DNA of 29,313 bases from Andalucia godoyi And28 (taxonomy: Eukaryota > Protista > Jakobida). This document shows positions 258-22,404 of this stretch, one piece after another. Each line of letters opens with the position of its first letter. Position 1 is the stretch's first letter. The notes below the pieces were generated by a model. It saw only the letters and a program-made list of their open reading frames with translations, made no database searches and had not been told where the DNA came from. A program made the position numbers and the translations under genes. The DNA lies in contig VRVR01000045.1 of the NCBI GenBank assembly GCA_009859145.1, forward strand, positions 1 to 29,313, given 5' to 3'.

Positions 258-3200
258 TCACGACTGACAGAACTCTTGCATTCTGTTCACAAGAACGGCA
301 TCTGCACTGGTGCGTTTCTTCACCTCAAACAGACTCGGGAACTTATGATGCAATGCTTGGAAAAAGGTTCGCAAACGTCGCCGGCCCTCCGTGTCAAGCG
401 CTGGAATCGCAAGGGACGGATTCAATACATCGTTCAGAATACGTGCGCGGATTTGGAATAGTGCGGATCTGTTATGCAGCCGAGTATGGGATTCGACATG
501 AGTTGATTCTTTCAGGTAAATCGCTACCGGCGGCAACCACGACAGGACGTCTCCAATTGTCAGGTACAACGCCGTCAGCACAGCTTGCTGTAGACACACT
601 TGCAAACGCTCCCCGTCGGACAGATCCGCCAATGAACGCACGGAAACCAGCCAGTCGGGCGAGAAGGCGACGTGGTAGTGAAACTCTTTTTTGTCACGCT
701 TCTGGATAAACGATGCGCCGCCCCAGTCAATCAAACATATGGGAAACCGAGAGTCGCTTTGCACCTCCTGCAACAGCACCACATTCTGTGGACAAATGTC
801 CATGTGATGCACACCATTCTGGCTGCACTGTAGTATGATGCTGGTCAACTGCTGCAAAAGTTCCGTGCAAAAAGCGAGGGAGCGGTCCGGGTAACACGAT
901 GCAAGCGGCAACGGCACTCCTACAGGAGCAGTGCACAGAATTGCTCCATGATCGGACTGTTCAGAATGCAAGAGAGTGGGGACCCAGAAGCGACGACGGT
1001 CCCAGTCGATTCTGGAAAGCTCTTGGAGTGCACCCAGTTCGGTGGTCCACTCCGCGAGCTTCGATGCCGGAAAATACTTGACAACGACGGATGTTGTTGA
1101 ATCAAGAGTCGCGGTCGCTGGTTCCACAGCATCCATCTTCCCGATGCCATGGACCGGTGCACGCTGCAGCATTCCAGTCAATTCCAGTTTAGATGAACTG
1201 GAGAGTGAGCTCACGATTCCAGAAGAAAACATAGAGAGCGCTGGTTGCAGGGCTCCATTCCATCCGCACAAAGAATGAGGATCACTGGACAAGGAAAAGC
1301 AAAGACCTTTCATACCGTTCTCTTGCAGTGCAATTGGCACAATTTCCAGCAGTTCGCAGTCCCATCCAAACTCTAACGGATCAAAGACACACTGTGGCGA
1401 ATCTCCATCCAGTTATGGCGCAGGGAGTTGAGCGAACTGACGATCACATACAGGTGTGCAAAACTCCTGAATGAGTACTGCCATCGCATTGTCCACACCG
1501 CTTCGCTCTTTCAGTTCAAAAAGCGATGGAGCCACGTCTCTCAGCTGCTGGAAAAACAAGCGAAGAGGCCCAAGACCCTTCAAAACAGCCGTATCAAGTG
1601 AGGCATCCAGCAGATTACCGATGATGACTCTTCGAATCTTAAACAGGTCGTCCTTCGTTCGCACGCGTGTGTGCGAGTCCTGTTGCAGGTTCTTCTTATC
1701 AAGGACAATGGCCATTGGCGGTAGCCATGAAAGCACGTCGCCGAATGCAATGTACATTGTGGTCAGAATGGCTTGTTGCAGGCAAACCTGCAGTCGCTCG
1801 CCATCGGACAGATCTGCCAACGACGCCACTGCATCCAGCCAATCGGGTGAGAACGCAGAATGGTAGTGGAACTCATCGTCGCTCTTTTGCAAGAATGATG
1901 CACCGCCCCAGTCGATCAAGCATACAGGAAACATAAAATCATTGAGAGGTTCCGTCAGAAGCACGATGTTCTGCGGACAAATGTCCATATGGTAAATGCC
2001 CTTCTCGTGGCAATTCGCCACGATGGACGTCAGCTGCAGAAGGAGCTCGGTGCAATACTGAACCACACGGTCCGAAAAACAAGACGCAAGCGGCAACGGA
2101 CTTCCCACAGGAGCGGTGCATAGAATGCCGCCACGCTCGCACTGCTCGGAGAGCACAAGAGACGGCACCCAATACTTGTGAGCGCCCCAGTCGAGTCTTG
2201 AAATCTCGAGCAGAGCATTTCGCTCGGTTTCCATATCTGCGAGTTTCGAAGGGGGAAAGCTCTTCACGACCACTGGGGTCGACTGATCCACCAGACCTGT
2301 TGCAACCTCGACTGCATCCGGTTCTCCCACATCATGTACAGGTCCACGCTGTAGCATTCCGGTTAGCTCGACTTGGTGTGCAATTCGTAATGAAGAAACA
2401 ATTGCAGACGATGCTGCAGAGACAACAGGGGGAGCTTCTCCGTTCCAAGCACACAATGTATGAGAGTCAAACGACAACAACGTGCACAGCGCGTACAAAC
2501 CCTCGGTGTCCAATGTAACGGCATCAGTTTGAAAAAAATCATAGTCCCACCCTTTGCGCGTCTGCATAATGCGCAGATGCAAGAAGACGATCGACGTGCG
2601 GTTGCACGCAAATCCCCAGTACGAGCGCCGGCGTATGCCGCACTCTTCGACCATGTGTGCAAAGCGTTGGTACACTTGCCGAATAGCCTCCTCCAACTTC
2701 GCGTCCGCATGCTCGCCGCCAGATCCTTTAAGCTCTCCGACAACACAAGACTCAAAGTACGTGGGCAATCGCTTAGCAATTCGTCCTCGACAAAACAGCA
2801 AATCCACACGTTGGATCAGTCCATACAGAGCACTTCTCGAGAAGTCCACAAGGTGCACATCACCGTGTTTGGAGAGGAACCGAGTGAAAAACAGCCGAAA
2901 CTGATCTTGCAGCGGTGGTTCGGGGGAGTTGAGAGGTAAACTTCCAATCGTGTCATTCCACATGGATTGGAAATCATCCCAGTGCAAAGGAGCGGGAGCG
3001 GACGCGAACAGATGCTGGAGAGAGACCTTCGAAGTATGTAATTTTGTGCCGCGGCTGCGTGATGAGGACCCTACCGCCAACAAATCTTGAGATAATTTGG
3101 AGAGGAAATACTTGATATTCGACACCTCCTCTGCTGCTCGGGACTTCTTCGCTTGTTCCTCCGACTTCTTCGCTTGCTCTTCGGCAGCAAGTCGTCTTTG

Positions 3201-3284
3201 ATGCTCTGCCTCTTTCTCTAGGCTCAGCTGCTCGATCCGCTTGAGCAGCTTCTGGATCTCATCATTTGGATCAGGCGAACTCAT
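258..3284 (-). CDS. Coiled-coil / PD-(D/E)xK REase-like / tandem protein kinase-like protein (Crinkler/RHS-type effector architecture); 2 exons, join(1452..3284, 258..1391), about 988 aa
   Basis: ORFs 1413..3284 and 258..1340 are in the same frame, separated by one TAA that lies inside a 60-nt GTATGT...CAG intron. Both kinase copies have VVVK, a helix-C Glu, HMDICPQN and LIDWGG. The N-terminal part has RVDLLF...VVGELKG (REase-like) and an EEQAKKS coiled coil. The sequence upstream of the track's GTG start (GWDCELL) aligns with GWDYDFF in copy 1. Confidence 0.8.
1392..1451 (-). other. Predicted spliceosomal intron, 60 nt, phase 0, containing an in-frame TAA
   Basis: Minus strand reads cct|GTATGTgatcg...ataactgg...cgccaCAG|tgt. 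Removal gives the continuous reading ...QEFCTP-CVFDPLEFGWD... Confidence 0.8.
3142..3183 (-). repeat. Two near-identical 21-bp units encoding EEQAKKS in the kinase N-terminal coiled coil
   Basis: gacttcttcgcttg starts at 3142 and again at 3163. Confidence 0.75.
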
Positions 3285-3846: not shown

Positions 3847-5046
3847 TTATCCTGTACCTCGAATTCCATGAATTCTGTCGCCAACCAAAGAGAAAAGAAT
3901 GTCGGGAGGCATAGCTACAGTCTCGTTGTCGTTTCTGTAATAGTAGGAGGATCCGGGATTCGCGCAGTGAACAGTGCTACTCGGTGAAACGTCGATACGT
4001 ACGACAACTAATTCGTCAGGGCAGTTGGAAGTCATCAATTGAAGGAGGTCGCTGAGCTTTTTCTCAAGACTTTCGACGTAATGCCGTGTTTCTCCTGTTA
4101 GAACCAGGCCAGGTGGGCGAATAAGGCCGTTAATGCCGTTAGTTGCTTCATTCTGCAAGACCGTCACAGGATCAAATTCGACCAAAATGTCATTCAAGCA
4201 GGAGGGCATGATTGTTTGGCGTAAGCGCTCAACAATTTTGCGCTTCACTGCGTCGCGATCAGCAAATGGGATGTGGACACCCTGCACCACCGTCGAGTCG
4301 TGCACGCCAAGAAGCATTCTGCCTCCTCTGCAATTCAGAAACGCACAAACATTCTTCGGAACCATATTTTCTAAGTGGAATTGAAGACTCTCAGCAGACA
4401 TCGGATCCCACTCAATCTTGCCGCCTTTGCACTCCAGTTCATGAGACTCGTCCAGAAACAGTTTCATTCCTTTGACAAATATCAGTTCAGTTCCTGGAAT
4501 TCTTTTGAGAAGTGGACGAGCGTCAGCTTCCCTGGATATTGCGCATTTCTTCATCAGAGACAAGGCAAGTTTGTGCATCAGTTCTTTCTGGAGCACACCA
4601 GAACCAGCTTGGACTTCCGCAGATGCAATCACGTTGCCGTCGATCGACACGCTCCCAGCACAACTGCCCTCATTCATGTTCACATCCTGTCGAATGTCCA
4701 CGACATGTCCTTGCGACTGCAAGTTAACTCGTAACTGTTCCAACGCCGCAAGAGGAGTAAGCGATACTTCTGGTCTCTCAGAACTCGCATTTTTCAATGC
4801 CTGATGCAAAGCACAGATATTGTTCTTCACGACAAAATCTTCAAATGCCTTTTCTCGTGCCATCTTCTTTTTCACTTGTGGATTGTCACAGTATCCTGTC
4901 GCAAAACCCTCGACAGAAACCGTATACGTCCATTTCTTGGGTTCGGATTCATCACCGACTTCGGAAGTTTGCACGCCTTTGTCGATTTGTTGTGTGTATT
5001 CGTACGTCAATGCCACGGCATTCATGACTCCTGAAACCTCTGTCAT
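3847..5046 (-). CDS. Two dsRBD-like domains fused to a Schlafen/AlbA_2 domain, 399 aa
   Basis: ATG start. The C-terminal half has ESHELECK...KNVCAFLNCRGGRMLLGVHD...VQG (AlbA_2/Schlafen signature with ExxxxExK). The N-terminal KWTYTVSVEGFATG...KKKMAREKAFE and TPLAALEQL...GSVSIDGNVIASAE...KELMHKLALSL segments fit the dsRBD alpha-beta-beta-beta-alpha pattern. Confidence 0.75.
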   Translation of the reverse strand: MTEVSGVMNAVALTYEYTQQIDKGVQTSEVGDESEPKKWTYTVSVEGFATGYCDNPQVKKKMAREKAFEDFVVKNNICALHQALKNASSERPEVSLTPLAALEQLRVNLQSQGHVVDIRQDVNMNEGSCAGSVSIDGNVIASAEVQAGSGVLQKELMHKLALSLMKKCAISREADARPLLKRIPGTELIFVKGMKLFLDESHELECKGGKIEWDPMSAESLQFHLENMVPKNVCAFLNCRGGRMLLGVHDSTVVQGVHIPFADRDAVKRKIVERLRQTIMPSCLNDILVEFDPVTVLQNEATNGINGLIRPPGLVLTGETRHYVESLEKKLSDLLQLMTSNCPDELVVVRIDVSPSSTVHCANPGSSYYYRNDNETVAMPPDILFSLVGDRIHGIRGTG

Positions 5047-7886: not shown

Positions 7887-9051
7887 CTAAGGAAGAGCGG
7901 AACGGTTGTTGTGGATTGATCGTTGAACCTCTTCTGCATGACGGAGACTGTCGGTGTCAGGCAACAAATGTGTGGCACTTTGAGCCACTGCCAGACTGTT
8001 TTCAAGGTCCTTCTTGGAAAGCCTGTTGTTGCAAAAATCCACAGACAGTGAGTTCCATGCTCCTTCCAGGTCGCTCGCACTTCGAAGATAACAGTACCGC
8101 GCAAGCAAGATCTTATTCTGGAATTGCAGAAATGGGTGAAGAAGGAAAGGGGGTACAACAGAACAAAAAGACATAAACAGCGACGGAGGGAAAAAGATCG
8201 CTGCAGCGGAAGCAATTCCAGCCACACCAGACGCGAGCACGATACAAACCTCAAGATTTCTTTGCAGAACTTTTGCTTGTTCGAAGAGAACGCCTTTGGA
8301 TTCTTGCAAGTCGTTGTCAAATCCATTGAATTGAGGACGAAGGTTCTTCTTCCACTCTGACCATTGGGACACCATCAGTTTCTTACTCTCTGCCTTTTCC
8401 TTTTGAAACTCGGTCACATTCTGGAAAACCTTCCTGCCGCCGTGGAGCCATTTGTAATAGGATGCATCAGAGACATAGTCACGCGCCAGATTGCATTTGG
8501 TCTGCATCATGTCCTTCAGAGAGACAACCACGTCTTCTTCATAAGCAAGGCGCTCCGAGTTGCGCATTTCGGAGTCCAGCGAGTCAAACCGGTTGAGAAG
8601 TTGTCTGTACAAACGACTAGCATCAGAGTGTTCTTTTTGCCAAACTTCGAGATAATCAGAAAAATGAATACTGCCAATCGTCGAGGTGGCAAATGTTGAC
8701 AACGCAGCAGTAGCCCTCAACAACTTACTCGACGCGAACCGGCCAAGTGTCAACGATTGCAAGCACGCAGTGAGACCTGCTGAAATCCATAAACTGGCCC
8801 ATGTAATCTTTTGGATTTTGGAAACAAAATCGCGTTCTGCTTCGTGGCAATTGTACGCAATCAACGTACCTCGGCGTTGATTCCAATACAAGGATCTCAA
8901 GGAAGGTCTGGAGTGGGTCGCGAATACGTCAGTAACAGAGTCTGGAAAAAAGAGGTCATGGTCGAAGAGCATACCCGTCCCACTTTTTCTGTTCTACCGC
9001 ATGGTCAGCCGCAGTTGGCGCAGCAGAAAATAAAGACGTGAAAAGACCCAT
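7887..9051 (-). CDS. Tandem SLATT-like (2TM + 2TM) membrane protein; 2 exons, join(8975..9051, 7887..8907), about 365 aa, with MGxxxS N-terminus
   Basis: Two repeats of helix - hydrophobic hairpin - amphipathic helix: ITWASLWISAGLTACL/LLRATAALSTFATSTIGSI...EHSDASRLYRQL and VCIVLASGVAGIASAAAIF/LFMSFCSVVPPFLL...LARYCYL. The upstream exon MGLFTSLFSAAPTAADHAVEQKKWDG joins in frame through a 67-nt intron. The SLATT assignment is by pattern only. Confidence 0.65.
8908..8974 (-). other. Predicted spliceosomal intron, 67 nt, phase 2
   Basis: Minus strand reads gacgg|GTATGCtcttc...gtTACTGACgtattcgcgacccactcCAG|accttcc, with a canonical-like donor, branch point and acceptor. Splicing gives ...KWDG-PSLRSLYW... 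Confidence 0.72.
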
Positions 9052-9197
9052 GATGAAAGGGTTCCCAGAGGAGACTAGAATGGAGCAAAGGAGAAAAAGG
9101 AGAAGGAAGCCAAAACATTGCAGAATTGCCAAGCATTGAATTCTGCCCCGCCACGATTTTGCCGAAGATCGAGAATTTTACGTGTACATCAGACGAA

Positions 9198-10202
9198 TTA
9201 ATAAAGTTCAAAAAAATTCGTCAACAACTGGCATGTAGTCCCATATCGAAAGGCCGAAAGAATATCTGCAATATCTGCAGCTAAACGATAACGAGCGGCA
9301 AGTCGCTGTTGTTCATGTTGTGTTTGCAATGGCACCTGCGGCTTAAACTTGGCAAACAAATCCACTTGCTGATCGTATGGATCGGCCAAACAGGAAAAGG
9401 AAACGCCCTTGAACAAACACAGAAGAGTACGAATGAGCACTCTTTCCTGCAGATAGCTGTTGTCGGCAAGAGGAAAATCGGCAATCGATGCCATCACTGC
9501 TTGCTTGACGGAAAATGAAGAAACTTGCCTCCAAAACGCACGTTTCTGCACATTTCGCAGATGCTTCACCGTACGAATCACGTCTTGAAAAGCAGGGAAT
9601 GACTGTCAAAAGAAAGAGCGTAAGATTCGATGATGAGGGTATACAAAAGCAGCAAAGAGACATACGCTGACAGCAGCGACGGTTGAACGATGCTCGTCGT
9701 CGAGATGACTATCGTCCCAGGCGCTGTCATTTTGCCGTGAAGGGACTTTCCATTTCCCATCCTTGAAAATTGCGGGCAGCAAGTCATACTCGAATTCTTC
9801 CGTGTCCACAACTTCGACAGACACGCGATTTCTGATCGCACTGTGAATTCCAACCTGTTCACGGACGAATGATGCAAACTGCTTCAATACGGTGCGGGAA
9901 GCCGGCTCTGGAGCAGAAGAGTCCAACATGATACGACAGAGTAGATCCACATCCGATCCAGAGGGAACGTCCAGGCCCTGAATCGAACTGCCGGCTAGCT
10001 TGATCCCTCCCGTCAACTTGTAATTCTTCTGAAGAAACTTTTTTGTCAATTTGCGCTCCGCAACAGGACGGCTGGGAGAAAGAATACGTCTCATGCGGTC
10101 TACGAGCTCGCTACGAGCTTGCTGTTGCTCGGGTCCCAGGCGAAGACGACTGGACACAGGCTTCGGACGCTCTCGAAGAGACTTCAAAACATCGATTGAC
10201 AC
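9198..10202 (-). CDS. cGAS/OAS/SMODS (CD-NTase)-like nucleotidyltransferase; join(9666..10202, 9198..9602), at least 313 codons, true start unresolved
   Basis: NTase motif LAGSSIQGLDVPSGSDVDLL (hGS-x11-DhD) and third acid in EYDLLPA. After the intron, FPAFQDVIRTVKHLRN...SSFSVKQAV...LADPYDQQVDL matches the OAS/CD-NTase C-terminal helical lobe pattern. The track start at 10202 is a GTG directly after an in-frame TGA; the first ATG is at 10094. Confidence 0.82.
9603..9665 (-). other. Predicted spliceosomal intron, 63 nt, phase 0, containing an in-frame TGA
   Basis: Minus strand reads gtcagc|GTATGTctctttgctgc...ctctttcttttgaCAG|tcattccct with a strong pyrimidine tract. It joins ORF 9606..10202 to ORF 9198..9581 in frame. 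Confidence 0.88.
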
Positions 10203-10430
10203 TCAATTTTGAAAGTCGTCGGCAAAGTCCCTACACTTCTTCAAGAACTCATCCACATGTTCTTCCACATTCTGAAAATCGTTTGCAAATCGGCGACACT
10301 CTTCTGAAAATGGCACCATTTTGTGAGGCTGCGATTTCGAGAAAACAAAATGTCGAGGCTTTGGTTTCTGGTCAGAAGAAACAGTCAACCGGGTCTTTTT
10401 CTCGGTGATTCGGACCCCGGTCTCTTTCAT
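10203..10430 (-). CDS. Short 75-aa ORF in frame with the NTase; possibly its N-terminal part
   Basis: ATG start. It contains an internal duplicated motif CRRFANDFQN / CRDFADDFQN, and its TGA is immediately followed by the NTase frame. Confidence 0.35.
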   Translation of the reverse strand: MKETGVRITEKKTRLTVSSDQKPKPRHFVFSKSQPHKMVPFSEECRRFANDFQNVEEHVDEFLKKCRDFADDFQN

Positions 10431-10518
10431 TACGTCAGGATCTCCGACGAAACTAAGCTGCTGGGAAAAGAGCGTTTATTTCCATCCATCCGAGTCCACC
10501 GTTTCACAAACATCACGT

Positions 10519-13500
10519 TTATTGTGACATGTAGCTACTCGCGCATCTCTTGAAGAAGTCCAGCGCATCGGAAGGCGGAAGAGCGATCCACGAATTCAGT
10601 AGCGCAATGTACGCCTCCTTGGTTGACCGATTTTCCTGTTTTCGAAGAAGACGCAGCACATCCGAATCGGGATCATTGGGAGCTGGAAACTTTGCGTCAA
10701 TATCCGGGCTTTGGAGAGAGGCAAGTATGACGCAAACATATCCCTGAAACAGTTCCATGAAACTGCTGTCATGCCACTTCTCCAGTGTCGTTTGAGAAGC
10801 AAATACAATTGCTGCTTGCTCGAATGCACACGAGGGTATCTGAAGTTTCAAATGATGTGCCTCCACATGGTTCACCATTTTCAAAACCTTGATGATAGCA
10901 CAAAAGCCCTTGTAAACATTGTTCAGTTCCTCTATGTTCCTACGCGCACCAACGTTCTGGGATACTTTGAAATCGCCATTTTTTCCATCCAGAAGTAGAA
11001 ATTTTCCAGCCAGAGTCTGCAAAGCGGGTAGCAAATCTACTTGAGCAATATCGGGGCTGTGTGGATCTCGAAGAGACACCGAGAATCGAATCTTGCCGTC
11101 AGTACGACAACTATCAACAACAACCGGTTTATGGCCTTTCGACTCCTCCTGAAGGACTTTCTTCAACGCATCGATAAAGAGGTTTCCGAGGAGTCTTACT
11201 TGCTCCGGGTTCACGGGTTGATTGACCGGAGAAGGCCAAGTTGCAACATTCTCTTGACCATCGTACTGGACACGCGTAGCGAGATTGGAGTTCAAGACTA
11301 CTACCACATCCATATCAGGATCGAACAGATTCGTTTGGTTCGCGATACTCCCACACAATACGGGTTCTGGAGTTAGGGTCAATGAGGGCAATTCTGTTGA
11401 ATGGGCTGAACGTAGCACAGCCCATATAGAACAAATCGCAATTCTTAGAGAATCAAAAAACCTGTTAAAACGGTGAAGCCGACTGTTCAGAATGCTTTCA
11501 TCTTGTTTGAGTTGGGACAAAAACTGCCACAAACCAGCATCCTCTCTGGTTTTCCCAATACGCGTAGAACTAAGCAAATTTTGTATTGCGTTCGAACTGT
11601 CTTCAAGAGAACGTGTTACGTGCTTCCGTGAATCAGCGTCTTGTAGTAAGGTCTCTGATCGAATGGACATGCGTTCTGAACCGGCGCCACTCAATGGAAC
11701 GCCAGAATACGGTGCAGAGTTCCCAGAAGGCATGGAGTTCGGATGCATCGGCTCTGGTTGCTTCGTCTTTGACCCTCCAACGATTCTGCGTGGTATTTGA
11801 GCCCCGCGAAACGCTCTTTCTTTCCATTGAAGAATCGATGAATCGTCGAATGGTTCGCCCTTGAAGACAATTTGGTGGAATTCACTGTTGGGGTGCGCAG
11901 CATGCAACTGTTCCAAAAGACCTCGAATTTCCATCCACCGAATTTCGCCATTCGACGTTCGAACCACCAAAAAAAAGAGCGAGGATGACTGACTCCAGTA
12001 TCGATGGTGTCGGAGGTTCCGGATGCGAAGTATTTCCTCGCCATTTGCTTTCGTGTGAAGATGTGAATCGCCCGATTTCAACTGCAGATAGACACGTTGA
12101 CCAGTGGCTTGATGACCATCGTTCTTAAACTCGATTTCCATGTCGATTCCGTGATCCGAAGTCGTGAGCTCGCGGCAGATCTGCCTGGCTTCCGACACCT
12201 TCGCAATGACTTCTCCCACAAGCACCCGTTCCTTGCTTTCATTATCCAGTGCATGGTTTGTTTGATCGTTCAGTTCCGCCACGCGCAAATCAATCTCAGG
12301 ATCAGCAAATTGCTTTTCAATATCATCTTCAAAAGGCATCTTCTCTTCGCACAATGGACAACAAATGTATGTCTTTCCAATCTCTTTCCTTTGTCGAGCG
12401 ATATCATTATCTGACGGTGATCCACAGGTGCACACATAATGGCGAATTCGCACAATGTCTTTTGCATTCTTCTGTTGAAGATGATTGTGAATGAACTGGC
12501 AAAACACAATCTTCTCGCCGATTTCAATCTCGGGATCGAAAAAGACCTCCAGCAACCCGTTTCGCTCCTCGGTACCAGGAGCCAGTTTGAATCCCATAAT
12601 CTTCGAATCACTTTTCTTCGATGAAAATTCAGCAGCACGCATCCAAAGCCCTTTCTTTTTGAACTCGCCTGTGTAGTGCATTCGGATGACCAGAGTTGAA
12701 TAAATGTCATCCGCAGGCCCCGAAAACAAATAGGAGACCAGCAAGGATGCACGGTGAACCAGTGAAGGAGGCTCCATTCGACACAAGGCCGGGAAATACA
12801 AGAACGTTGCATCTCCACGAATTGCTTCTCTCAAGCATATCGTCTGCTTGGTGAACGTATGGTCCAGGCCATGAAGCATCATCCGGTGCTCATGGTCCGA
12901 GACTGACACAGACAACTCGGCTCGATGAACAAAGTCACCGCGCAGCAAATCTTGGTGCGGAAAGCTTCCTCGTTGCTCAGGATCCGAAGACACTGCTTTC
13001 ACTAATTCTTGTCCATACTCGCTCATCAACGATGGACGCAGTAGATAGTACGATGCAAACTGCAGCGGCCATATCAGTCCAACAGCGCACATCATGTTCA
13101 CTACAGCTTTCACGCCGTCATCCGTGCATTGAACGGGGCCAAGACGACTCTTCATCTCGGAGAGCAACTCTTCCAGTGTGATCAGCGACTTTGTTTTCAC
13201 GTCGTCCTTGAAAGCCAGAATTTCCCTGCTTATGTGTTGATACCGATTCGAAGAGGAACTCCATGGAATGTTTTCCCAATTGATACGCTGAACGATTTCT
13301 TGCGAAAGTTCTGCACAGCCTGTGTTTTTCAGGGCACTGGTCTCGAAAATACAATCTACAAAGCCTCTCTTTCGAGCAACAGCAGCGACACTTTCCTTTG
13401 GAACACGCCATCGGCGTGCATCGCAACGACCAGCCACCAGAATCTTCGTTACTGGCTTGTCTTGCATCACGTATGAGACCAGTCGATCCCAATCCGAAAT

Positions 13501-15369
13501 CGTTTCGACAACATTCGATTTTTGAGGATCGACAACGAGGATCACCAAGGATGCGTCGTGCATGAAGAGCTGATGAATCAGCCGTTGATCTGCTTGCCCG
13601 CCAAAATCCCACAACAGAATCTCTCGTTGCGATGTCGAGTCGTTGTTCGAATGATTAGAGCTTAAAGGCCATCTTGTTGACCATGCGCCAACCGTCGAGC
13701 ATCTCCCTGGATCGAACTCATCGTTCGAGAGACGCTGCGCCAATCCCGTTTTTCCTGCCGAGGTGTCACCAACAATGAGCACTTTGGCATTCATGTAAAG
13801 ATGATCGTTACTTGCAGAAGAAGGATTGAAACCCGATCCTGAAGAGCTTTGAGCAAAAATGCTCGTTAAATCCCAATAGTGAAGTGTTGCTATGTTGGAA
13901 CACGAGATTAACTCATTCGGGTTGGTGAACGACCATGTTAAAGCCATCATTGGTGCAAGAGAATACATGGCTGCCAGAACAGAGCCTTGAAAAGCATTCC
14001 AAACGCGAATTTGAAAATTGCGATGACCAGACACAAAACGTGGATCATCCTGGGCATACCACAGAAGGCACAAAACCTCAGACTGAGATTCCAATATTCC
14101 CACCAACTTGTCGTTTTGTAGATCCCAATGGAAGATGCAAGAGGAGGATGCTTTCGACACGACAAGAAGATACCGTTCACAAGGACTCCACGAAACAACT
14201 AACGCTTCAATGGATGAACCCAACGGAAAAGGGCATCGGTGGACAATGCGGGCTCCATTCTCTGCCAAAACATCCCAAGCTACAATAGCGTCAGATGATA
14301 TGGACAACAGATGATGTCCATTCGAAGAACAAAGTAAGGATTGCACTTGAGAATGATGACCAAGCCGGCCCGAATTCACACAGGTCCAATTTTCTGCAGT
14401 GGGAAGCGACGCCACATAGAGTTGACCAATCTTGTCCATCCCATACACTCGATTGTTAAAGGCACATAAAGCAACGAAATCCGTAGGCATGGGTTCAGTG
14501 ACAAGTTTGCAGGAACTTTCTGAATCAAGCGCAGAAACCAGCACTAGGTTTGGTTGCTTCTCCATGAAACCCAGACGCTTGGACAGGAACAGACATTCTT
14601 CACGAGATAGCTTACCATGAGCAACAGATATTGGCACAGAAAGATCAGTTCGTTGAAGCTGAGGGTTCCGTAAAACACGGTGTTTTTCAGCAGATTCCCC
14701 AAGCAAAACAACAAACCACTGCCTTGCATCCTGGAAAAACAAATGCCTTCCATCGAACGAGAAATCTGCCTTCGTAGCACCACCAGACAGTTCTTCTGAA
14801 CAAAAAAGTACTGCCAAAGAACAGCTGATGAGTTGGGATGCAGCAAATGCAGCAGACACGGATATCAAGATTTCCCGTTCAATTTGAGAAGGTCGATTTG
14901 AAACATCGTAGAATTTGACGGTCAAGGCGTGGCGCATTGTCTTGGAACGTTCGTGAACTGGAAAAAATTCTGACAAGCTTTGCGGCAAGAAAGAAGCGAT
15001 AGGAAACTCGTTCACTTCTTTGCTGTCGGCAACTCGGAAAGGTTGCGCTTCGGCATCAAGGGTCTCGATAAACCGTCGAATTCGGACAGCAGATCGACTC
15101 TCATCCGAATAACCCCTGCTGACAAACACAACATGGATCACGTTCCTTTCGTTAAATTTTTCACTCGTGAAAGTCTGATGTATGAATTCTTTCAATGCGA
15201 TTTCATTCGACTCGTCCAACCGTTCATCAACGGCCACCCTATTGTGCCTGAACGAAGACAGGCTGTGCAATCGGATGAAACGGGCGCTTGTCGTCAGCAG
15301 TTCATAACCATTCTTGCTGCACAGCGACCACAAACTTAGAGCGTAGGGTCTCCCACTGAGGTCCGTCAT
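10519..15369 (-). CDS. 1616-aa Roco protein: N-terminal unknown domain - WD40 repeats - Roc GTPase - COR - Cys cluster - DUF4365-like nuclease fold - cGAS/OAS/SMODS-like nucleotidyltransferase
   Basis: Uninterrupted ATG-started ORF. WD40-like units at about 14500-13870 (LLCSSNGHHLLSISSDAIVAWD, VSGHRNFQIRVWN). Roc motifs from about 13794: GDTSAGKT, STVG, LWDFGGQ, LVAGRCD, FETSA. CTCG...CPLC at about 12430-12350. DHGIDMEIEFK...VYLQLKSG at about 12230-11800. NTase LCGSIANQTNLFDPDMDVVV, VDLLPA, IIKVLK...IPSCAFEQ, PAPNDPDSDVL at about 11480-10519. Confidence 0.9.
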   Translation of the reverse strand: MTDLSGRPYALSLWSLCSKNGYELLTTSARFIRLHSLSSFRHNRVAVDERLDESNEIALKEFIHQTFTSEKFNERNVIHVVFVSRGYSDESRSAVRIRRFIETLDAEAQPFRVADSKEVNEFPIASFLPQSLSEFFPVHERSKTMRHALTVKFYDVSNRPSQIEREILISVSAAFAASQLISCSLAVLFCSEELSGGATKADFSFDGRHLFFQDARQWFVVLLGESAEKHRVLRNPQLQRTDLSVPISVAHGKLSREECLFLSKRLGFMEKQPNLVLVSALDSESSCKLVTEPMPTDFVALCAFNNRVYGMDKIGQLYVASLPTAENWTCVNSGRLGHHSQVQSLLCSSNGHHLLSISSDAIVAWDVLAENGARIVHRCPFPLGSSIEALVVSWSPCERYLLVVSKASSSCIFHWDLQNDKLVGILESQSEVLCLLWYAQDDPRFVSGHRNFQIRVWNAFQGSVLAAMYSLAPMMALTWSFTNPNELISCSNIATLHYWDLTSIFAQSSSGSGFNPSSASNDHLYMNAKVLIVGDTSAGKTGLAQRLSNDEFDPGRCSTVGAWSTRWPLSSNHSNNDSTSQREILLWDFGGQADQRLIHQLFMHDASLVILVVDPQKSNVVETISDWDRLVSYVMQDKPVTKILVAGRCDARRWRVPKESVAAVARKRGFVDCIFETSALKNTGCAELSQEIVQRINWENIPWSSSSNRYQHISREILAFKDDVKTKSLITLEELLSEMKSRLGPVQCTDDGVKAVVNMMCAVGLIWPLQFASYYLLRPSLMSEYGQELVKAVSSDPEQRGSFPHQDLLRGDFVHRAELSVSVSDHEHRMMLHGLDHTFTKQTICLREAIRGDATFLYFPALCRMEPPSLVHRASLLVSYLFSGPADDIYSTLVIRMHYTGEFKKKGLWMRAAEFSSKKSDSKIMGFKLAPGTEERNGLLEVFFDPEIEIGEKIVFCQFIHNHLQQKNAKDIVRIRHYVCTCGSPSDNDIARQRKEIGKTYICCPLCEEKMPFEDDIEKQFADPEIDLRVAELNDQTNHALDNESKERVLVGEVIAKVSEARQICRELTTSDHGIDMEIEFKNDGHQATGQRVYLQLKSGDSHLHTKANGEEILRIRNLRHHRYWSQSSSLFFLVVRTSNGEIRWMEIRGLLEQLHAAHPNSEFHQIVFKGEPFDDSSILQWKERAFRGAQIPRRIVGGSKTKQPEPMHPNSMPSGNSAPYSGVPLSGAGSERMSIRSETLLQDADSRKHVTRSLEDSSNAIQNLLSSTRIGKTREDAGLWQFLSQLKQDESILNSRLHRFNRFFDSLRIAICSIWAVLRSAHSTELPSLTLTPEPVLCGSIANQTNLFDPDMDVVVVLNSNLATRVQYDGQENVATWPSPVNQPVNPEQVRLLGNLFIDALKKVLQEESKGHKPVVVDSCRTDGKIRFSVSLRDPHSPDIAQVDLLPALQTLAGKFLLLDGKNGDFKVSQNVGARRNIEELNNVYKGFCAIIKVLKMVNHVEAHHLKLQIPSCAFEQAAIVFASQTTLEKWHDSSFMELFQGYVCVILASLQSPDIDAKFPAPNDPDSDVLRLLRKQENRSTKEAYIALLNSWIALPPSDALDFFKRCASSYMSQ

Positions 15370-17810: not shown

Positions 17811-18225
17811 AATATTTTACGCATGACTCCTGAACGGCGTCGTCCCCAAGAGAGTTTCTTTTGCCAGACTGCTCGCCGTTCGCGACTCTACCAGTCCCCA
17901 GCATTATCTCAGAAAAAGTGCTGTGGACCATTTTGCGTATTTGTCCACTGTAGTAGTCAAGCCGGGAACTCGAAGTGCATCAAAAAGCAAACGTTGTTCT
18001 TCGGAGTTTCCTTGTGTGACCTCGTCACATTCTCTCTTTCTGCACCACTCTTTTCATCCGACCTGAAGTTTGATGATAATGAGGGGAGCTTCACCTGCAA
18101 GCGTGGTGCTCGAAGATGACAAATCACCTGATTTTATTTCTCTTTTCTTTGTAGTTGTGTTTATCGTCTGTGTCGTCAAGCTATGCGTGTTATGTTGTGA
18201 GGATTGTGTTGGCAGCCCAGAAGAA

Positions 18226-19299
18226 ATGAGCCGCCAACCTGCTACAACAAGGAGGGAACCTACTATTGCGTCACAGCTTGAGGAATTACAGAGACGGGAA
18301 CGAGACGTCAGAAATCGAGAAGTCGTGCTTCAGCAATCGACCCGTGACGTTGAAGAACGAGTGCGACAAGCTCAGGCCAAAGACGCGTACATCCAAGGAC
18401 GAGAGAGAGCCATTGCACAACAAGAAGTCGTGCTTCAGCAATCGACCCGTGACGTTGAAGAACGAGTGCGACAAGCTCAGGCCAAAGACGCGTACATCCA
18501 AGGACGAGAGAGAGCCATTGCACAACAAGAAGTCGTGCTTCAGCAATCGACCCGTGACGTTGAAGAACGAGTGCGACTGACTCAACAAAAAGAACAGCAT
18601 TTACGGAGGTTGGAACATGATGTGTCACCGCAATACACCGCACTTCAGCAGTCTAAACATGAGATGCAACAACTGGCGAATTGCGAGTCGTCGGAGACAG
18701 ACGATGATGACGAAGAGGAAATAGACCGTGAGAGCGACCTCTCTTCTTCAACTCCGCGATCTTCCGAACGATTCGTTTGGCCGAATGTGTCTTTGCGTGC
18801 GATGGCCCATCGACGGCAACAGCAACCTCGTTTGACTGCATCGCTTCGTGCTCGCAGGACCCAGCTAAGACATCAAATCTGGAAGATCGTTGGATACGAA
18901 CCTGCATTGCACCTGCTGAACGATGCGCTGCTGCACTCTTCTTTCGTACAGGAACACAGTCGTCTGACACTGGTTTCCAACGAAGGGCTGGCGTGGTTTG
19001 GCGATGCCGTTCAGCGAATGTGGGCCTCAGCACTGGTATTTGAATCTTCCTCTCAAGCATCGAAAAAACGTTTACACGATCTTCGCGCGAATTATGTGAC
19101 GGATAAATCCTTTATCCCGTGGGCCAAAAGTCACAGAGTGGAACAGTGTTTGTTGACTGGGAACGGTTTTAAGCATAATGTGCAGGCATGCAAAGTGTTA
19201 GGAACAGCTGTTGAGGCGATTATTGCTGCTGTCTTTCTTGAATGTGGTATGCAGGCTGCAGGCAGATTCTGCCAGGCGGTGTATGATTCGAACGGATGA
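18226..19299 (+). CDS. Repeat-expanded coiled-coil protein with a C-terminal RNase III domain (divergent active site); the ORF is open upstream to 18070
   Basis: ALLHSSF...SNEGLAWFGDAV...KVLGTAVEAIIAAVFLECG aligns to the RNase III signatures NERLEFLGDAV and KxLADxxEA. No dsRBD is visible. The start is uncertain: ATG at 18073 or 18079 versus 18226. Confidence 0.8.
   Translation: MSRQPATTRREPTIASQLEELQRRERDVRNREVVLQQSTRDVEERVRQAQAKDAYIQGRERAIAQQEVVLQQSTRDVEERVRQAQAKDAYIQGRERAIAQQEVVLQQSTRDVEERVRLTQQKEQHLRRLEHDVSPQYTALQQSKHEMQQLANCESSETDDDDEEEIDRESDLSSSTPRSSERFVWPNVSLRAMAHRRQQQPRLTASLRARRTQLRHQIWKIVGYEPALHLLNDALLHSSFVQEHSRLTLVSNEGLAWFGDAVQRMWASALVFESSSQASKKRLHDLRANYVTDKSFIPWAKSHRVEQCLLTGNGFKHNVQACKVLGTAVEAIIAAVFLECGMQAAGRFCQAVYDSNG
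18318..18577 (+). repeat. Perfect 105-bp tandem repeat, about 2.5 copies, encoding 35-aa units (EVVLQQSTRDVEERVRQAQAKDAYIQGRERAIAQQ)
   Basis: gaagtcgtgcttcagc begins at 18319, 18424 and 18529, and the copies are identical. Confidence 0.95.
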
Positions 19300-20187: not shown

Positions 20188-22065
20188 TCACTGCCAACGA
20201 ATGATTAAAGATGTTCTTCCACAATTACACACAGTGCTTGGAGCATCGGCACTGCTGAATGCTTGGACATGGATTGTTGGGAATGAAGGGACTCTCTCCA
20301 TCACAGCCTGGTATTCTTTCAACATCTCACCCATCAAGGTTCCGATATCCTTTGTGTTTTCCATAGAAACGTCGGTGTACGAACTCCGGAGGCACATTGT
20401 TGCTCGAAGAGAAAACGGGTGTTGCGAGAGTGACTGCTTACGCTTGATGTGAACCACCAATTTTGCAAGCAAAACTGTCCTTTCAACACTTGCAAGGATC
20501 GGACGGTTGCATTCCCAGGTCTGCATTTGTGTAAACCCGGGCAAGCCTCCTTCACTCGTGGCGACCAAAGAGTTAAGCTGTTGCGTGAACAGATCTAACT
20601 CTTTCTGAATCTCCTGGATATGTTCCCTGTCACGTCGTTCACAATTCAGCACATCAATCAAGAGCTTTCTGGCATGCTGCTGGAACAGCCGAAGAAGAAA
20701 GTAATGCACTGGAACATCTTCGACAGTCGGTGGCAGGTTGATCCAGTTCGGTGAACCAGGTATCAAGAATTTTGGACTCCAAATCAGCCACAAATGCCAC
20801 ATCAATGCTGCAAGCTGACCATGCTGCACGAAATCATGTCTCCGAATTGCCCATTCAGCATGGAGAGCCGTCTTCATTGTCCATGATCGTAAAGCCATAT
20901 CCTTTAGGATCCACTCATGCCACGGTTGTTCCGGATCACCATCCACAAAAAATTTCTTTGGTGTTTGGCTTCCTGGATGCTTGTCTTGTTTCAAAAACTG
21001 TTCAAGAACTTTCGTCCCGTCAGTTATTCGAGGAACCAGGCCAGGGTGTGAATCCAGAAACCTCTGAAGATCGGGGTGTCCGATATCCGTCTGATTCAAC
21101 GGCACCTGGCTCTTAGAGAGAAGCTCGAAGAATGGCAACGGAAGAACTGGCATTGTGCGCATTGGATGGGAATCGCAGAGAGGATTAGCATACTTGGACA
21201 CCAGATCGTACAGTGGACCTTCTGTTTGAAACGTGCAAAAGAAGAAGAATTTCCCAAAATGCACACACATTCCATCTGGCAGTACCCAGCAGTCCGGCTG
21301 AAACGCCTCGAAGTGTGGAATGTTCTCCTTGAAGAGAAAATCCATCGGAGAACCTATGGGAGGTTTTTCGATGTCATAATTTTCAACATACATAAACCAC
21401 AGAGCGTTCTTCCAAGGTTCATTCGCAGTTTTCTTCTTCTTCTTCGGCTTGGAGTCTTGCACCAAGAACTCTCGACAATGTTCTATTAATTCAAGGACAG
21501 CAGACACATTCTGCTCGGGAACAAGCTTGTCCCACAGCGACACAACGAAACATCTCCACAGCAATGAAACAACGAAAGGGACACGATCTTGAATCTCCTT
21601 GCCCAATTTCGGATTCGACGAGGCTTTGAGGACGCGCTTCATCCAACCCGAGAATTTGCTTTCGATTTTGGACAGTCGATTTTCGCAAGAATCGCACAGT
21701 AACTGGGGGTACTTAACATCGCTCACGTCCTTCACCACGGCATCTCCTATAAAGCCCAGAGCTAGCCCCTTGGACCCCATGAGTTCGTCCAGAACAAACT
21801 TTGGAATTGTGTGAGACTGCTTCGTGAACGGATTATCAAAATCGCACTTTCCACACAAACAACAACGAAATGGGCCATCAGATTCTTCCACCTCTCGATG
21901 TTCAATTTTTCTGATATAAAAATAGGCTGCTGTGAGATCCCTGTGAGCGACGTAGAGCTGGCGAGTCGATGCGCGTGAATCGCGCAGGATCGCTAAACTT
22001 TCGTCCAGGTGAGACTTCGTACGAATCTGCTGAAGAAGTTCAGGCTGTTCCGGTGCCGAAGCCAT
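20188..22065 (-). CDS. 625-aa protein with an N-terminal bacterial-type HNH/His-Me finger-like Zn module
   Basis: ATG start. It has CCLC...SHTIPKF...LLCDSCENRLSKIE...FVVSLLWR, a pattern I recognise from bacterial HNH-like proteins. The C-terminal half is helical and unassigned. Confidence 0.65.
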   Translation of the reverse strand: MASAPEQPELLQQIRTKSHLDESLAILRDSRASTRQLYVAHRDLTAAYFYIRKIEHREVEESDGPFRCCLCGKCDFDNPFTKQSHTIPKFVLDELMGSKGLALGFIGDAVVKDVSDVKYPQLLCDSCENRLSKIESKFSGWMKRVLKASSNPKLGKEIQDRVPFVVSLLWRCFVVSLWDKLVPEQNVSAVLELIEHCREFLVQDSKPKKKKKTANEPWKNALWFMYVENYDIEKPPIGSPMDFLFKENIPHFEAFQPDCWVLPDGMCVHFGKFFFFCTFQTEGPLYDLVSKYANPLCDSHPMRTMPVLPLPFFELLSKSQVPLNQTDIGHPDLQRFLDSHPGLVPRITDGTKVLEQFLKQDKHPGSQTPKKFFVDGDPEQPWHEWILKDMALRSWTMKTALHAEWAIRRHDFVQHGQLAALMWHLWLIWSPKFLIPGSPNWINLPPTVEDVPVHYFLLRLFQQHARKLLIDVLNCERRDREHIQEIQKELDLFTQQLNSLVATSEGGLPGFTQMQTWECNRPILASVERTVLLAKLVVHIKRKQSLSQHPFSLRATMCLRSSYTDVSMENTKDIGTLMGEMLKEYQAVMERVPSFPTIHVQAFSSADAPSTVCNCGRTSLIIRWQ

Positions 22066-22404
22066 TTTTAATGATCACATCAAATTCATTAAGATAAATG
22101 AAATACAAGAAAGAGAAAAAGAAAAGAAGCTCGCAAACCATCTGGAGACAGTATGCTGACCTTCAAGGACCTTCGCCACTGAATAGGCAATCCCGCCAAT
22201 GGAGTGTTAATAAGAGGCGGCGAATGCAGCGGATGCAAGCACGGCGACGAACTGATGCGATGTGACGTAGAAAAGAGTGCGATCAGAACGTCAACGATTG
22301 GGAAGCGACCACAACAGCATCTGTTCTCGCGGCGACAACTCCTTTTTCATAGAAATCGTTTTAAGTCATCTCTCGCCGAGTTTCTGATTTCACTGGATTC
22401 AACA

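Follow-up and report, generated by a model that had tools for sequence, protein, structure and literature searches.

A subtelomeric gene cluster of Andalucia godoyi with a SMODS-like nucleotidyltransferase, an orphan double-hairpin protein and a WD40-Roc-DUF4365 protein of bacterial origin

Bacterial pairs of SMODS and SLATT genes, as well as type I cyclic-oligonucleotide-based anti-phage signalling systems (CBASS) with two-transmembrane (2TM) effectors, have been described (Burroughs et al. 2015, as cited in PMC7159879). SMODS-type CD-NTases, termed eSMODS, are found in eukaryotes, too, namely in Amoebozoa, choanoflagellates, Ancyromonadida and a sponge. They nest in the bacterial clade D, and no effector linked to them has been described (Culbertson & Levin 2023, PMC10732462). 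Eukaryotic SMODS-type nucleotidyltransferases (NTases) and the bacterial SMODS-SLATT and CBASS-2TM pairings are therefore already known. In our study, we analysed a window of 29,313 nucleotides, i.e. the whole stretch of contig VRVR01000045.1 from the jakobid Andalucia godoyi And28, and focused on a cluster of three genes. These genes encode a large multidomain protein (gene 1), a SMODS-like NTase (gene 2) and a protein with two hydrophobic hairpins (gene 3). To our knowledge, no clustered pair of an NTase gene and a hairpin-membrane protein gene has been described in a eukaryote, and literature searches revealed none. The same applies for a WD40-Roc-DUF4365 defence protein that moved into a protist and was fused to an NTase-like domain, and for the concentration of such genes with other immune-like genes at a subtelomere.

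The reading that we prefer, with a probability of about 0.4, is that of a signalling module, in which a messenger made by the NTases would activate the gene 3 protein and the nuclease of gene 1 would serve as a second killing arm. Three points matter regardless of this link, the third being the concentration of prokaryote-type immune genes near the telomere (see below). Gene 1 is a clear case of a bacterial WD40-Roc-DUF4365 protein which was gained and remodelled by a protist, with the loss of a TIR domain and the gain of an NTase-like domain. Furthermore, a SMODS-like NTase is present in a species scored empty by the main survey of eukaryotic CD-NTases (PMC10732462).

The three-gene locus and its setting

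The window represents a subtelomere of A. godoyi with the chromosome end at the window start. The three genes are co-oriented on the minus strand and spaced 146-424 base pairs (bp) apart. The distance from the gene 1 stop codon to the gene 2 ATG is 424 bp, or 199 bp if an upstream ATG at 10319 is counted, and that from the gene 2 stop codon to the gene 3 ATG is 146 bp. An earlier note, made from the letters of this DNA, had described three adjacent minus-strand genes with gaps of a few hundred bp or less in a eukaryotic subtelomere, and both the layout and the setting were borne out. Lengths in amino acids (aa) are given with the features:

6-199, no strand: telomere repeat (CCCTAA)32 (Tandem Repeats Finder, 32 copies, 96% match), which puts the cluster about 8-15 kb from the chromosome end
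10519-15369 (stop codon included), minus strand: gene 1, an uninterrupted single-exon open reading frame (ORF) of 1616 aa, from the ORF list
9198-10094, minus strand: gene 2 (ANDGO_01851), 277 aa by spliced translation, exons 9666-10094 and 9198-9602
9603-9665, minus strand: gene 2 intron, 63 bp, GTATGT...AG
7887-9051, minus strand: gene 3 (ANDGO_01901), 365 aa by spliced translation, exons 8975-9051 and 7887-8907
8908-8974, minus strand: gene 3 intron, 67 bp, GTATGC...AG

The spliced translations of genes 2 and 3 are exactly equal to the EukProt models ANDGO_01851 and ANDGO_01901. The splice sites of the two introns are canonical, and neither reading frame is broken. The base composition, determined as guanine-plus-cytosine content (GC) and as GC at third codon positions (GC3), is uniform over gene 1 and its neighbours. 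The three-gene locus is native nuclear DNA of the eukaryote, because the contig carries the telomere, the products are identical to those in EukProt and GC and GC3 are uniform. This agrees with the earlier conclusion drawn from the introns of the last two genes. Bacterial contamination was considered and rejected on the basis of the telomere on the contig, the intron-bearing neighbours and the uniform GC and GC3.

The three gene products

The gene 2 protein carries the NTase triad AGSSIQGLDVPSGSDVDLL ... YDLLP (AGS-x11-DVD), with GS...DVD at 9939-9995 and YDLLP at 9774-9788. SMODS/CBASS cyclases ranked first for this protein in Pfam, NCBIfam and PADLOC. The top match in Pfam was SMODS (1.3e-4, 22.7 bits, cut-off 26.5), and in NCBIfam it was CBASS_cyclase_b (1.2e-7, 31.6 bits, cut-off 200), aligned from residue 19 with model positions 27-172 of 275. 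Five CBASS cyclase models of PADLOC matched, the best at 3e-7. These scores are all under the curated cut-offs, but they are significant in the sense of a distant similarity (E 1e-4 to 1e-7). With a length of 277 aa compared to the 275 positions of the CBASS cyclase model, gene 2 nearly spans the whole model. The best sequence in the PDB was CdnD (9ntn, E=0.16), in which the catalytic SDVD is aligned to the DVD of gene 2. We regard gene 2 as a predicted minimal SMODS/CD-NTase-like enzyme, which is a remote relative and, by the curators' criteria, not a family member.

The triads of gene 2 and of the gene 1 C-terminus (see below) were examined with a Pol-beta signature consisting of hG[GS], 7-13 residues, DxD with hydrophobic residues and a later hDhhP strand. 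It was composed after inspection of the sequences and is essentially the classical superfamily signature. The pattern occurred in none of 20,000 shuffles of gene 2 or of the gene 1 C-terminus. When all six-frame ORFs of 100 aa or more were scanned over the window (18,425 aa), these two domains were its only occurrences.

A word-indexed protein search with gene 2 returned its paralogue ANDGO_06078 only, and scans of prokaryotic genomes and viral contigs were empty. Where the two overlap, the paralogue is 93% identical, and it has 75 additional residues at its start (MVPFSEECRRFANDFQN...). The corresponding region in front of gene 2 is still recognisable:

10203-10319, minus strand: earlier 5' coding part of gene 2 (MVPFSEECRRFANDFQN...), whose frame opens with the ATG at 10319 and is closed by an in-frame TGA at 10203-10205

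This TGA is a Ser codon in ANDGO_06078, and the single-base nonsense change removes the N-terminal extension of 75 aa. One or both copies of gene 2 may be impaired, decaying or mis-modelled. The extension, intact in the paralogue, holds a short internal repeat (CRRFANDFQN / CRDFADDFQN).

In the survey of Culbertson & Levin (PMC10732462), A. godoyi (EP00762) received a 0 in all CD-NTase classes, i.e. cGLR, OAS and eSMODS. The combined table of their S1 File has a "1" in the STING column of EP00762, which was considered and set aside; it resembles a flag common to all genome entries, and the "Genomes" block is 0.

The gene 3 protein contains two hydrophobic hairpins:

8661-8816, minus strand: hairpin 1, residues 57-108, marginal (Kyte-Doolittle about 1.1-1.2)
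8115-8252, minus strand: hairpin 2, residues 245-290, strongly hydrophobic (Kyte-Doolittle 2.3)

The N-terminus MGLFTS (MGxxxS), which is the same in the paralogue ANDGO_06074, fits the N-myristoylation pattern G-{EDRKHPFYW}-x(2)-[STAGCN]-{P}. ANDGO_06074 is 78% identical to gene 3 and differs by substitutions only, save one single-residue gap. The identity is lowest in the hairpins (67-70%) and highest in the helical region of 136 aa between them (86%). Comparison of the two halves of gene 3 gave no sequence similarity. The predicted topology would put both ends and the inter-hairpin region in the cytosol, as expected of a cytosol-gated membrane effector.

The earlier note had recognised two SLATT-like hairpins in this protein. 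Two hydrophobic hairpins are indeed present; their assignment to SLATT was not supported. SLATT_1 of NCBIfam matched gene 3 and its paralogue with E values of 0.035 and 0.18 (14.1 and 11.8 bits, respectively, cut-off 41), and SLATT_4 of Pfam matched ANDGO_06074 only (0.055, 13.6 bits, cut-off 27). Each of these three matches, contributed by two SLATT models of separate libraries, is located on hairpin 1 and runs collinear to its model. No SLATT match was obtained in the controls, which comprised two reversed and six window-shuffled full-length sequences in NCBIfam and two reversed first halves in Pfam. Unrelated families match the real gene 3 sequences equally well (HEF_HK, 0.012), and the reversed or shuffled controls gather unrelated matches at E 0.01-0.04, so that the SLATT scores are in the range of noise. 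We consider a genuine homology of gene 3 to SLATT to be less likely than not.

The word-indexed search of 5.8 billion proteins with gene 3 returned ANDGO_06074 only. A profile of the two paralogues, run with full HMMER against 1.84 billion representatives, again detected ANDGO_06074 only and no SLATT relative. Viral contigs were empty, and sequence and profile searches of the PDB gave no meaningful match. Gene 3 is thus best described as an orphan that is specific to this lineage and combines an N-myristoylation motif with two hydrophobic hairpins of helical type.

The EukProt protein set of A. godoyi does not contain gene 1. No exact entry was present, and a protein search with the C-terminal 360 aa matched nothing, not even the gene itself. 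The gene is apparently unannotated, and surveys based on proteomes cannot see it. Its product is composed of the following regions:

14362-15369, minus strand: N-terminal region, residues 1-336, a fold without match, situated where bacterial relatives have TIR and the first WD40 blades
13864-14361, minus strand: WD40 beta-propeller blades, residues 337-502, the presumed sensor (Pfam beta-propeller families 3e-11 to 1e-6), aligned to the WD40 of bacterial homologues
13270-13785, minus strand: Roc/Rab-like GTPase, residues 529-700, with P-loop GDTSAGKTG and switch II DFGGQ
12334-13269, minus strand: middle region with Cys-rich zinc ribbon, residues 701-1012, conserved with bacterial homologues and occupying the COR position
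11806-12252, minus strand: DUF4365 nuclease of the restriction-endonuclease fold (DREN-type), residues 1040-1188 (Pfam DUF4365 1.3e-15 when scanned alone), about 50% identical to bacterial copies
10522-11640, minus strand: added Pol-beta-type NTase-like domain, residues 1244-1616, after a Pro/Ser/Gly-rich linker
11302-11355, minus strand: GS...DMD motif of the C-terminal domain
11026-11040, minus strand: third Asp of the C-terminal domain (VDLLP)

Residues 337-1188 of gene 1 are 36-45% identical, end to end, with stand-alone bacterial TIR-WD40-Roc-DUF4365 proteins. A scan of metagenomes with the C-terminal 593 residues detected 28 loci, matched only via the part with the zinc ribbon and DUF4365. 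One of the ORFs found (locus L020, 1122 aa; TIR_2, WD40, Roc and DUF4365) exhibits 39% identity over 853 aa (E=0, gene 1 residues 337-1183). A profile built from eight bacterial homologues aligned to gene 1 residues 335-1188 with 774 bits, and the P-loop, DFGGQ and D...ExK are conserved. In prokaryotic genomes (one genome per species, query residues 520-1190) 22 relatives were detected, 15 of which cover nearly the whole stretch of 665 aa with 38-45% identity. The hosts are Undibacterium, Acidobacteriota, Zixibacteria, Deferribacteres, Cyanobacteria (Acaryochloris marina NC_009925.1), Planctomycetota, Verrucomicrobiota and Bacteroidota. Such a scattered spread over phyla is typical for mobile defence genes. 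In PADLOC, the bacterial homologues matched the Argonaute-associated restriction endonuclease (Aga_REase, 1.3e-12), ThsB-type TIR and PDC-S66.

The core of gene 1 is thus a putative bacterial single-gene defence protein which was gained horizontally. We place the direction of transfer from bacteria to the jakobid because of the end-to-end homology to stand-alone proteins of many phyla. The earlier note had missed this origin of the core, together with its DUF4365 nuclease. Stand-alone proteins of the type TIR-WD40-Roc-zinc ribbon-DUF4365 make up a family that is widely distributed, in at least eight bacterial phyla, and has variable gene neighbourhoods (loci L029-L045). The cyanobacterial copies L034 and L035 are longer (about 1370-1410 aa), L035 being located in Acaryochloris marina NC_009925.1 at 2155391-2173364.

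The individual domains of the core are well preserved. The Roc domain matched Pfam Roc with 2.4e-20 (residues 529-650) and Ras with 3.2e-16, and in the PDB it matched Rab7L1 (1.2e-13) as well as the prokaryotic Roco entries 4wnr and 3dpu. The zinc ribbon gave matches to Zn_ribbon_GRF (Pfam, 0.0018-0.008). The nuclease motif D...ExK (GIDMEIEFK ... QLKSG) is intact in the alignment with the homologues. A COR domain was not detectable, neither by any Pfam family up to E=10 in residues 697-977 nor by a sequence match in the PDB. Likewise, no Pfam family up to E=10, and thus no COR, was found in the equivalent middle stretch of 305 aa from two bacterial versions. The label "Roco", which had been given to gene 1 before, was dropped, since Roc is clear and COR is undetectable by sequence comparison.

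Both ends of gene 1 differ from the bacterial proteins. All nine full-length metagenome homologues (1120-1162 aa) open with a canonical TIR and finish just past DUF4365, and the cyanobacterial L035 is TIR-first, too. Residues 1-336 of gene 1 matched nothing in Pfam, PADLOC, NCBIfam or the PDB, and the profile of bacterial homologues begins to align at residue 335. A TIR domain was not found in gene 1, and no TIR remnant was present anywhere in the window, including the region upstream of gene 1. At the other end, about 430 stop-free codons follow DUF4365, past the end of the bacterial proteins. We regard the added C-terminal domain as coding because of this long stop-free frame. In the jakobid, gene 1 has lost TIR, and an N-terminal region new to the protein as well as the NTase-like domain at its C-terminus were added.

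The triad of the added domain is CGSIANQTNLFDPDMDVV ... VDLLP (CGS-x10-DMD). Its similarity to gene 2 is weak and collinear, running from the DLLPA strand into the next helices (BLASTP E=0.021), and the Smith-Waterman score was reached by 24 of 1000 shuffles (p about 0.024). A comparison of gene 2 with the gene 1 C-terminus by hhalign was uninformative, the effective number of sequences (Neff) being 1. In Pfam the domain matched NTP_transf_2 alone (E=0.22, on the GS...DxD stretch), and no match was found in the PDB, PADLOC, NCBIfam, metagenome contigs, viral contigs or the collection of 5.8 billion proteins. By its motifs, it is a candidate CD-NTase-type enzyme. Of the two cGAS/OAS/SMODS-type NTases with full triads that had been proposed for the cluster, both triads are present and gene 2 is backed by profile matches to SMODS and CBASS; for gene 1, the class is given by its motifs.

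Signalling module or independent genes

If the cluster acts as a signalling module, gene 2 would respond to infection or another insult by making a messenger, either a nucleotide or an oligonucleotide. The NTase domain in gene 1 might make a messenger as well, once the WD40 sensor and the Roc switch are triggered. The messenger would then activate the membrane-anchored (myristoyl) gene 3 protein, resulting in its oligomerisation and in membrane damage. In parallel, the DUF4365 nuclease of gene 1 could degrade nucleic acids as the second killing arm. As a consequence the infected cell would stop growing or die. Judged by its sequence, a CBASS-like reading of the cluster is plausible. An extended version of it, which we consider unlikely, is a jakobid-built CBASS-like death pathway with parts of mixed origin. 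In this version a WD40-Roc-nuclease-NTase fusion and a SMODS-type cyclase would produce a messenger gating a myristoylated, SLATT-like double-hairpin pore, all encoded in a subtelomeric "defence island". If true, this would be the first physically clustered second-messenger immune module of synthase and membrane effector in a eukaryote.

A signalling link would mean that operon-like immune modules of cyclase and effector are not confined to prokaryotes. It would also mean that a free-living, deep-branching eukaryote uses a CBASS-style abortive response, independent of the cGAS-STING and OAS-RNase L lineages.

The main alternative is that the three genes are neighbours by location only and have no function in common, as genes that evolve fast, were duplicated or came by horizontal transfer gather in subtelomeres. 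Gene 1 would then act alone, with WD40 as sensor, Roc as switch and DUF4365 as killing domain; gene 2 would have another receptor or substrate, and gene 3 would be an unrelated membrane protein. We take this to be a real possibility, short of even odds. Three observations argue against it and for a signalling module. SMODS-like NTases beside 2TM-hairpin proteins represent the defining pairing of the bacterial SMODS/SLATT and CBASS-2TM systems. Chance would hardly put two domains with an NTase triad into 1.4 kb, and the window ORFs (18,425 aa) contain no others. Finally, the gene 2/gene 3 pair is found consecutively and in the same order at two loci in EukProt, where the paralogues ANDGO_06078 and ANDGO_06074 (P001977/P001978) repeat the window pair (P007071/P007072). 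The immune-like neighbours of the cluster (Schlafen AlbA_2, RNase III and HerA/mad8-like ATPase, see below) are likewise counted for the module. In the search for a recurring NTase and 2TM linkage, as suggested by the earlier note, the paralogous pair from the same genome was the only further one obtained; no orthologues of gene 2 and gene 3 were found in the protein, metagenome, prokaryotic-genome or viral collections.

A number of results weigh against the signalling module, and several of them speak for mere co-location. The second pair of genes 2 and 3 has probably arisen by segmental duplication and in that case does not add independent evidence for a functional link. The whole window is uniformly gene-dense and contains further unrelated immune-like genes and subtelomeric paralogues; close spacing and co-orientation are ordinary there, which makes adjacency cheap. 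In bacteria, the relatives of gene 1 stand by themselves as single-gene systems, and the genes around them are unrelated. In their flanks no conserved neighbour was detected, and nothing like gene 2, gene 3, or the N- or C-terminal regions of gene 1. Since an NTase or 2TM partner does not accompany these relatives, the three genes were not passed on together in one operon, and the linkage of gene 1 to the other two genes is without precedent. No annotated paralogue of the NTase part of gene 1 was found. This part has no family assignment, and its single-sequence AlphaFold2 (AF2) model was unusable with a predicted local distance difference test (pLDDT) value of 35.

For gene 3, the SLATT scores of 12-14 bits are far under the cut-offs (27-41) and no better than those of unrelated matches, and the second hairpin matches nothing in Pfam or NCBIfam. 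PADLOC gave no match to gene 3 and chance-level matches to unrelated families for the paralogue, hence no known CBASS membrane effector; together with Pfam and NCBIfam, no CBASS effector or sensor family was matched. The AF2 model of gene 3 is all-helical and poor (pLDDT 51). With this model Foldseek retrieved generic helical bundles and alpha-pore-forming toxins only, at E values of at least 0.025 and template modelling (TM) scores below 0.4. A nucleotide-sensing domain (SAVED, STING, CARF or similar) was not detectable in any of the three proteins. Gene 2 has the premature stop compared to its paralogue, and the model of ANDGO_06078 ends within an intron. In addition, the catalytic activities, the messenger, its receptor and the outcome are all things that we infer.

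Alternatively, it might be that the NTases transfer nucleotides to a macromolecule and make no messenger, either in RNA tailing (as terminal uridylyltransferase or poly(A) polymerase, PAP) or in protein or toxin nucleotidylation (MNT-HEPN-type). In gene 1, the added domain would in this case act directly as effector or regulator, in the place of the lost TIR. Consistent with this, gene 2 has a secondary, weak Pfam match to an MTPAP-like palm domain (3.3e-3), the gene 1 domain matches the generic NTP_transf_2 only, and no messenger-receptor domain was found in the cluster. However, the CBASS/SMODS matches of gene 2 beat the PAP-like match by three to four orders of magnitude in three libraries, no PAP-associated or RNA-binding domain was detected, and a HEPN partner is missing from the cluster. 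We consider such a transfer improbable.

A decaying module, with gene 2 as an incipient pseudogene, gene 1 as an unannotated relic and nothing functional today, would agree with the in-frame TGA of gene 2 where the paralogue reads Ser, with the paralogue model that stops within an intron and with the lack of gene 1 in the annotated proteome, but it is improbable in view of the gene 1 frame, open over 4.85 kb with every catalytic motif intact and about 39% identity to bacterial relatives, the shortened gene 2, which still covers the whole minimal CD-NTase core, the canonical introns and intact frames of genes 2 and 3, and the gene 3 paralogues, which differ by substitutions only, bar the one single-residue gap.

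Neighbouring genes and known systems

Beside the telomere, two kinase-like ORFs are located at 258-1340 and 1413-3284 (both minus strand). The latter falls into a cluster of at least 90% identity with A. godoyi ANDGO_07768 and exhibits a weak match to the kinase of PADLOC PD-T4-6 (7e-9). These ORFs near the telomere point to subtelomeric gene families common to several chromosome ends. Between the telomere and the three-gene cluster there is an ORF of 399 aa (3847-5046, minus strand) with a Schlafen AlbA_2 domain (Pfam 1.4e-11), a domain associated with immunity and conflict systems.

On the other side of the cluster, an ORF at 18070-19299 (plus strand) encodes an RNase III domain (Pfam 3.2e-18) and contains a perfect tandem repeat of 105 bp (2.5 copies, 100% identity, 18318-18577), which is a recent in-frame duplication of 35 residues. 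The ORF of 731 aa at 22204-24399 (plus strand) matched mad8 of PADLOC, the HerA-like ATPase of the MADS defence system, with 4.6e-18, and CedD of NCBIfam with 5e-5. It is divergently paired with an ORF of 625 aa at 20188-22065 (minus strand), for which no family match was obtained; by its composition, the pair may be another prokaryote-type defence module. An ORF of 991 aa at 26313-29288 (minus strand), which nearly reaches the right window end, is Cys-rich with seven Ephrin_rec_like repeats and NCD3G (Pfam 2.8e-27 and 2.1e-13, respectively), and its product looks like a large surface or secreted protein.

Several prokaryote-type immune genes are concentrated near the telomere, which suggests that in some protists the subtelomeres may serve as defence islands.

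With the Roco proteins, e.g. LRRK2 and Roco of Chlorobium tepidum, gene 1 shares a Roc-type GTPase within a large multidomain protein with a repeat domain (WD40). It differs from them in that COR is undetectable by sequence in gene 1 and in its bacterial relatives, and in that a kinase or leucine-rich repeat domain is absent.

Compared to the eSMODS, gene 2 likewise has bacterial SMODS as its top Pfam match, and not OAS or Mab21. In contrast to them, it is under the SMODS gathering score, has no PF01909 match and has no close bacterial relative.

The likeness to bacterial TIR-WD40-Roc-DUF4365 proteins is much closer, since residues 337-1188 of gene 1 are collinear with them and all motifs are intact. 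The bacterial proteins (1120-1160 aa, up to about 1400 in cyanobacteria) are TIR-first and end right after DUF4365, whereas gene 1 lacks TIR and has a novel N-terminus of 336 aa and an addition of 430 aa consisting of linker and NTase-like domain.

DREN is the name for the DUF4365 nuclease of short-Argonaute systems of the SPARDA type, and its PADLOC model is "Aga_REase-PNTD1-PNTD2". Gene 1 carries the same effector family, a PD-(D/E)xK nuclease that represents the killing module of an activated defence protein. The predicted nuclease of gene 1 is fused to a WD40-Roc GTPase scaffold instead of an APAZ/prokaryotic Argonaute (pAgo) partner.

We know of no orthologous system of the gene 2/gene 3 cluster. 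The comparison with the bacterial SMODS-SLATT and CBASS-2TM pairs reveals several differences. The host is a eukaryote, genes 2 and 3 contain spliceosomal introns, and each gene would need its own promoter. Gene 2 is far under the cyclase cut-offs. Gene 3 has two hairpins and an N-myristoylation motif and is unplaceable by sequence in the SLATT or CBASS-effector families. What the locus has in common with these bacterial pairs is the arrangement itself, with the SMODS-like gene 2 directly beside a protein with a two-helix hairpin and flanking helices, co-oriented and tightly spaced.

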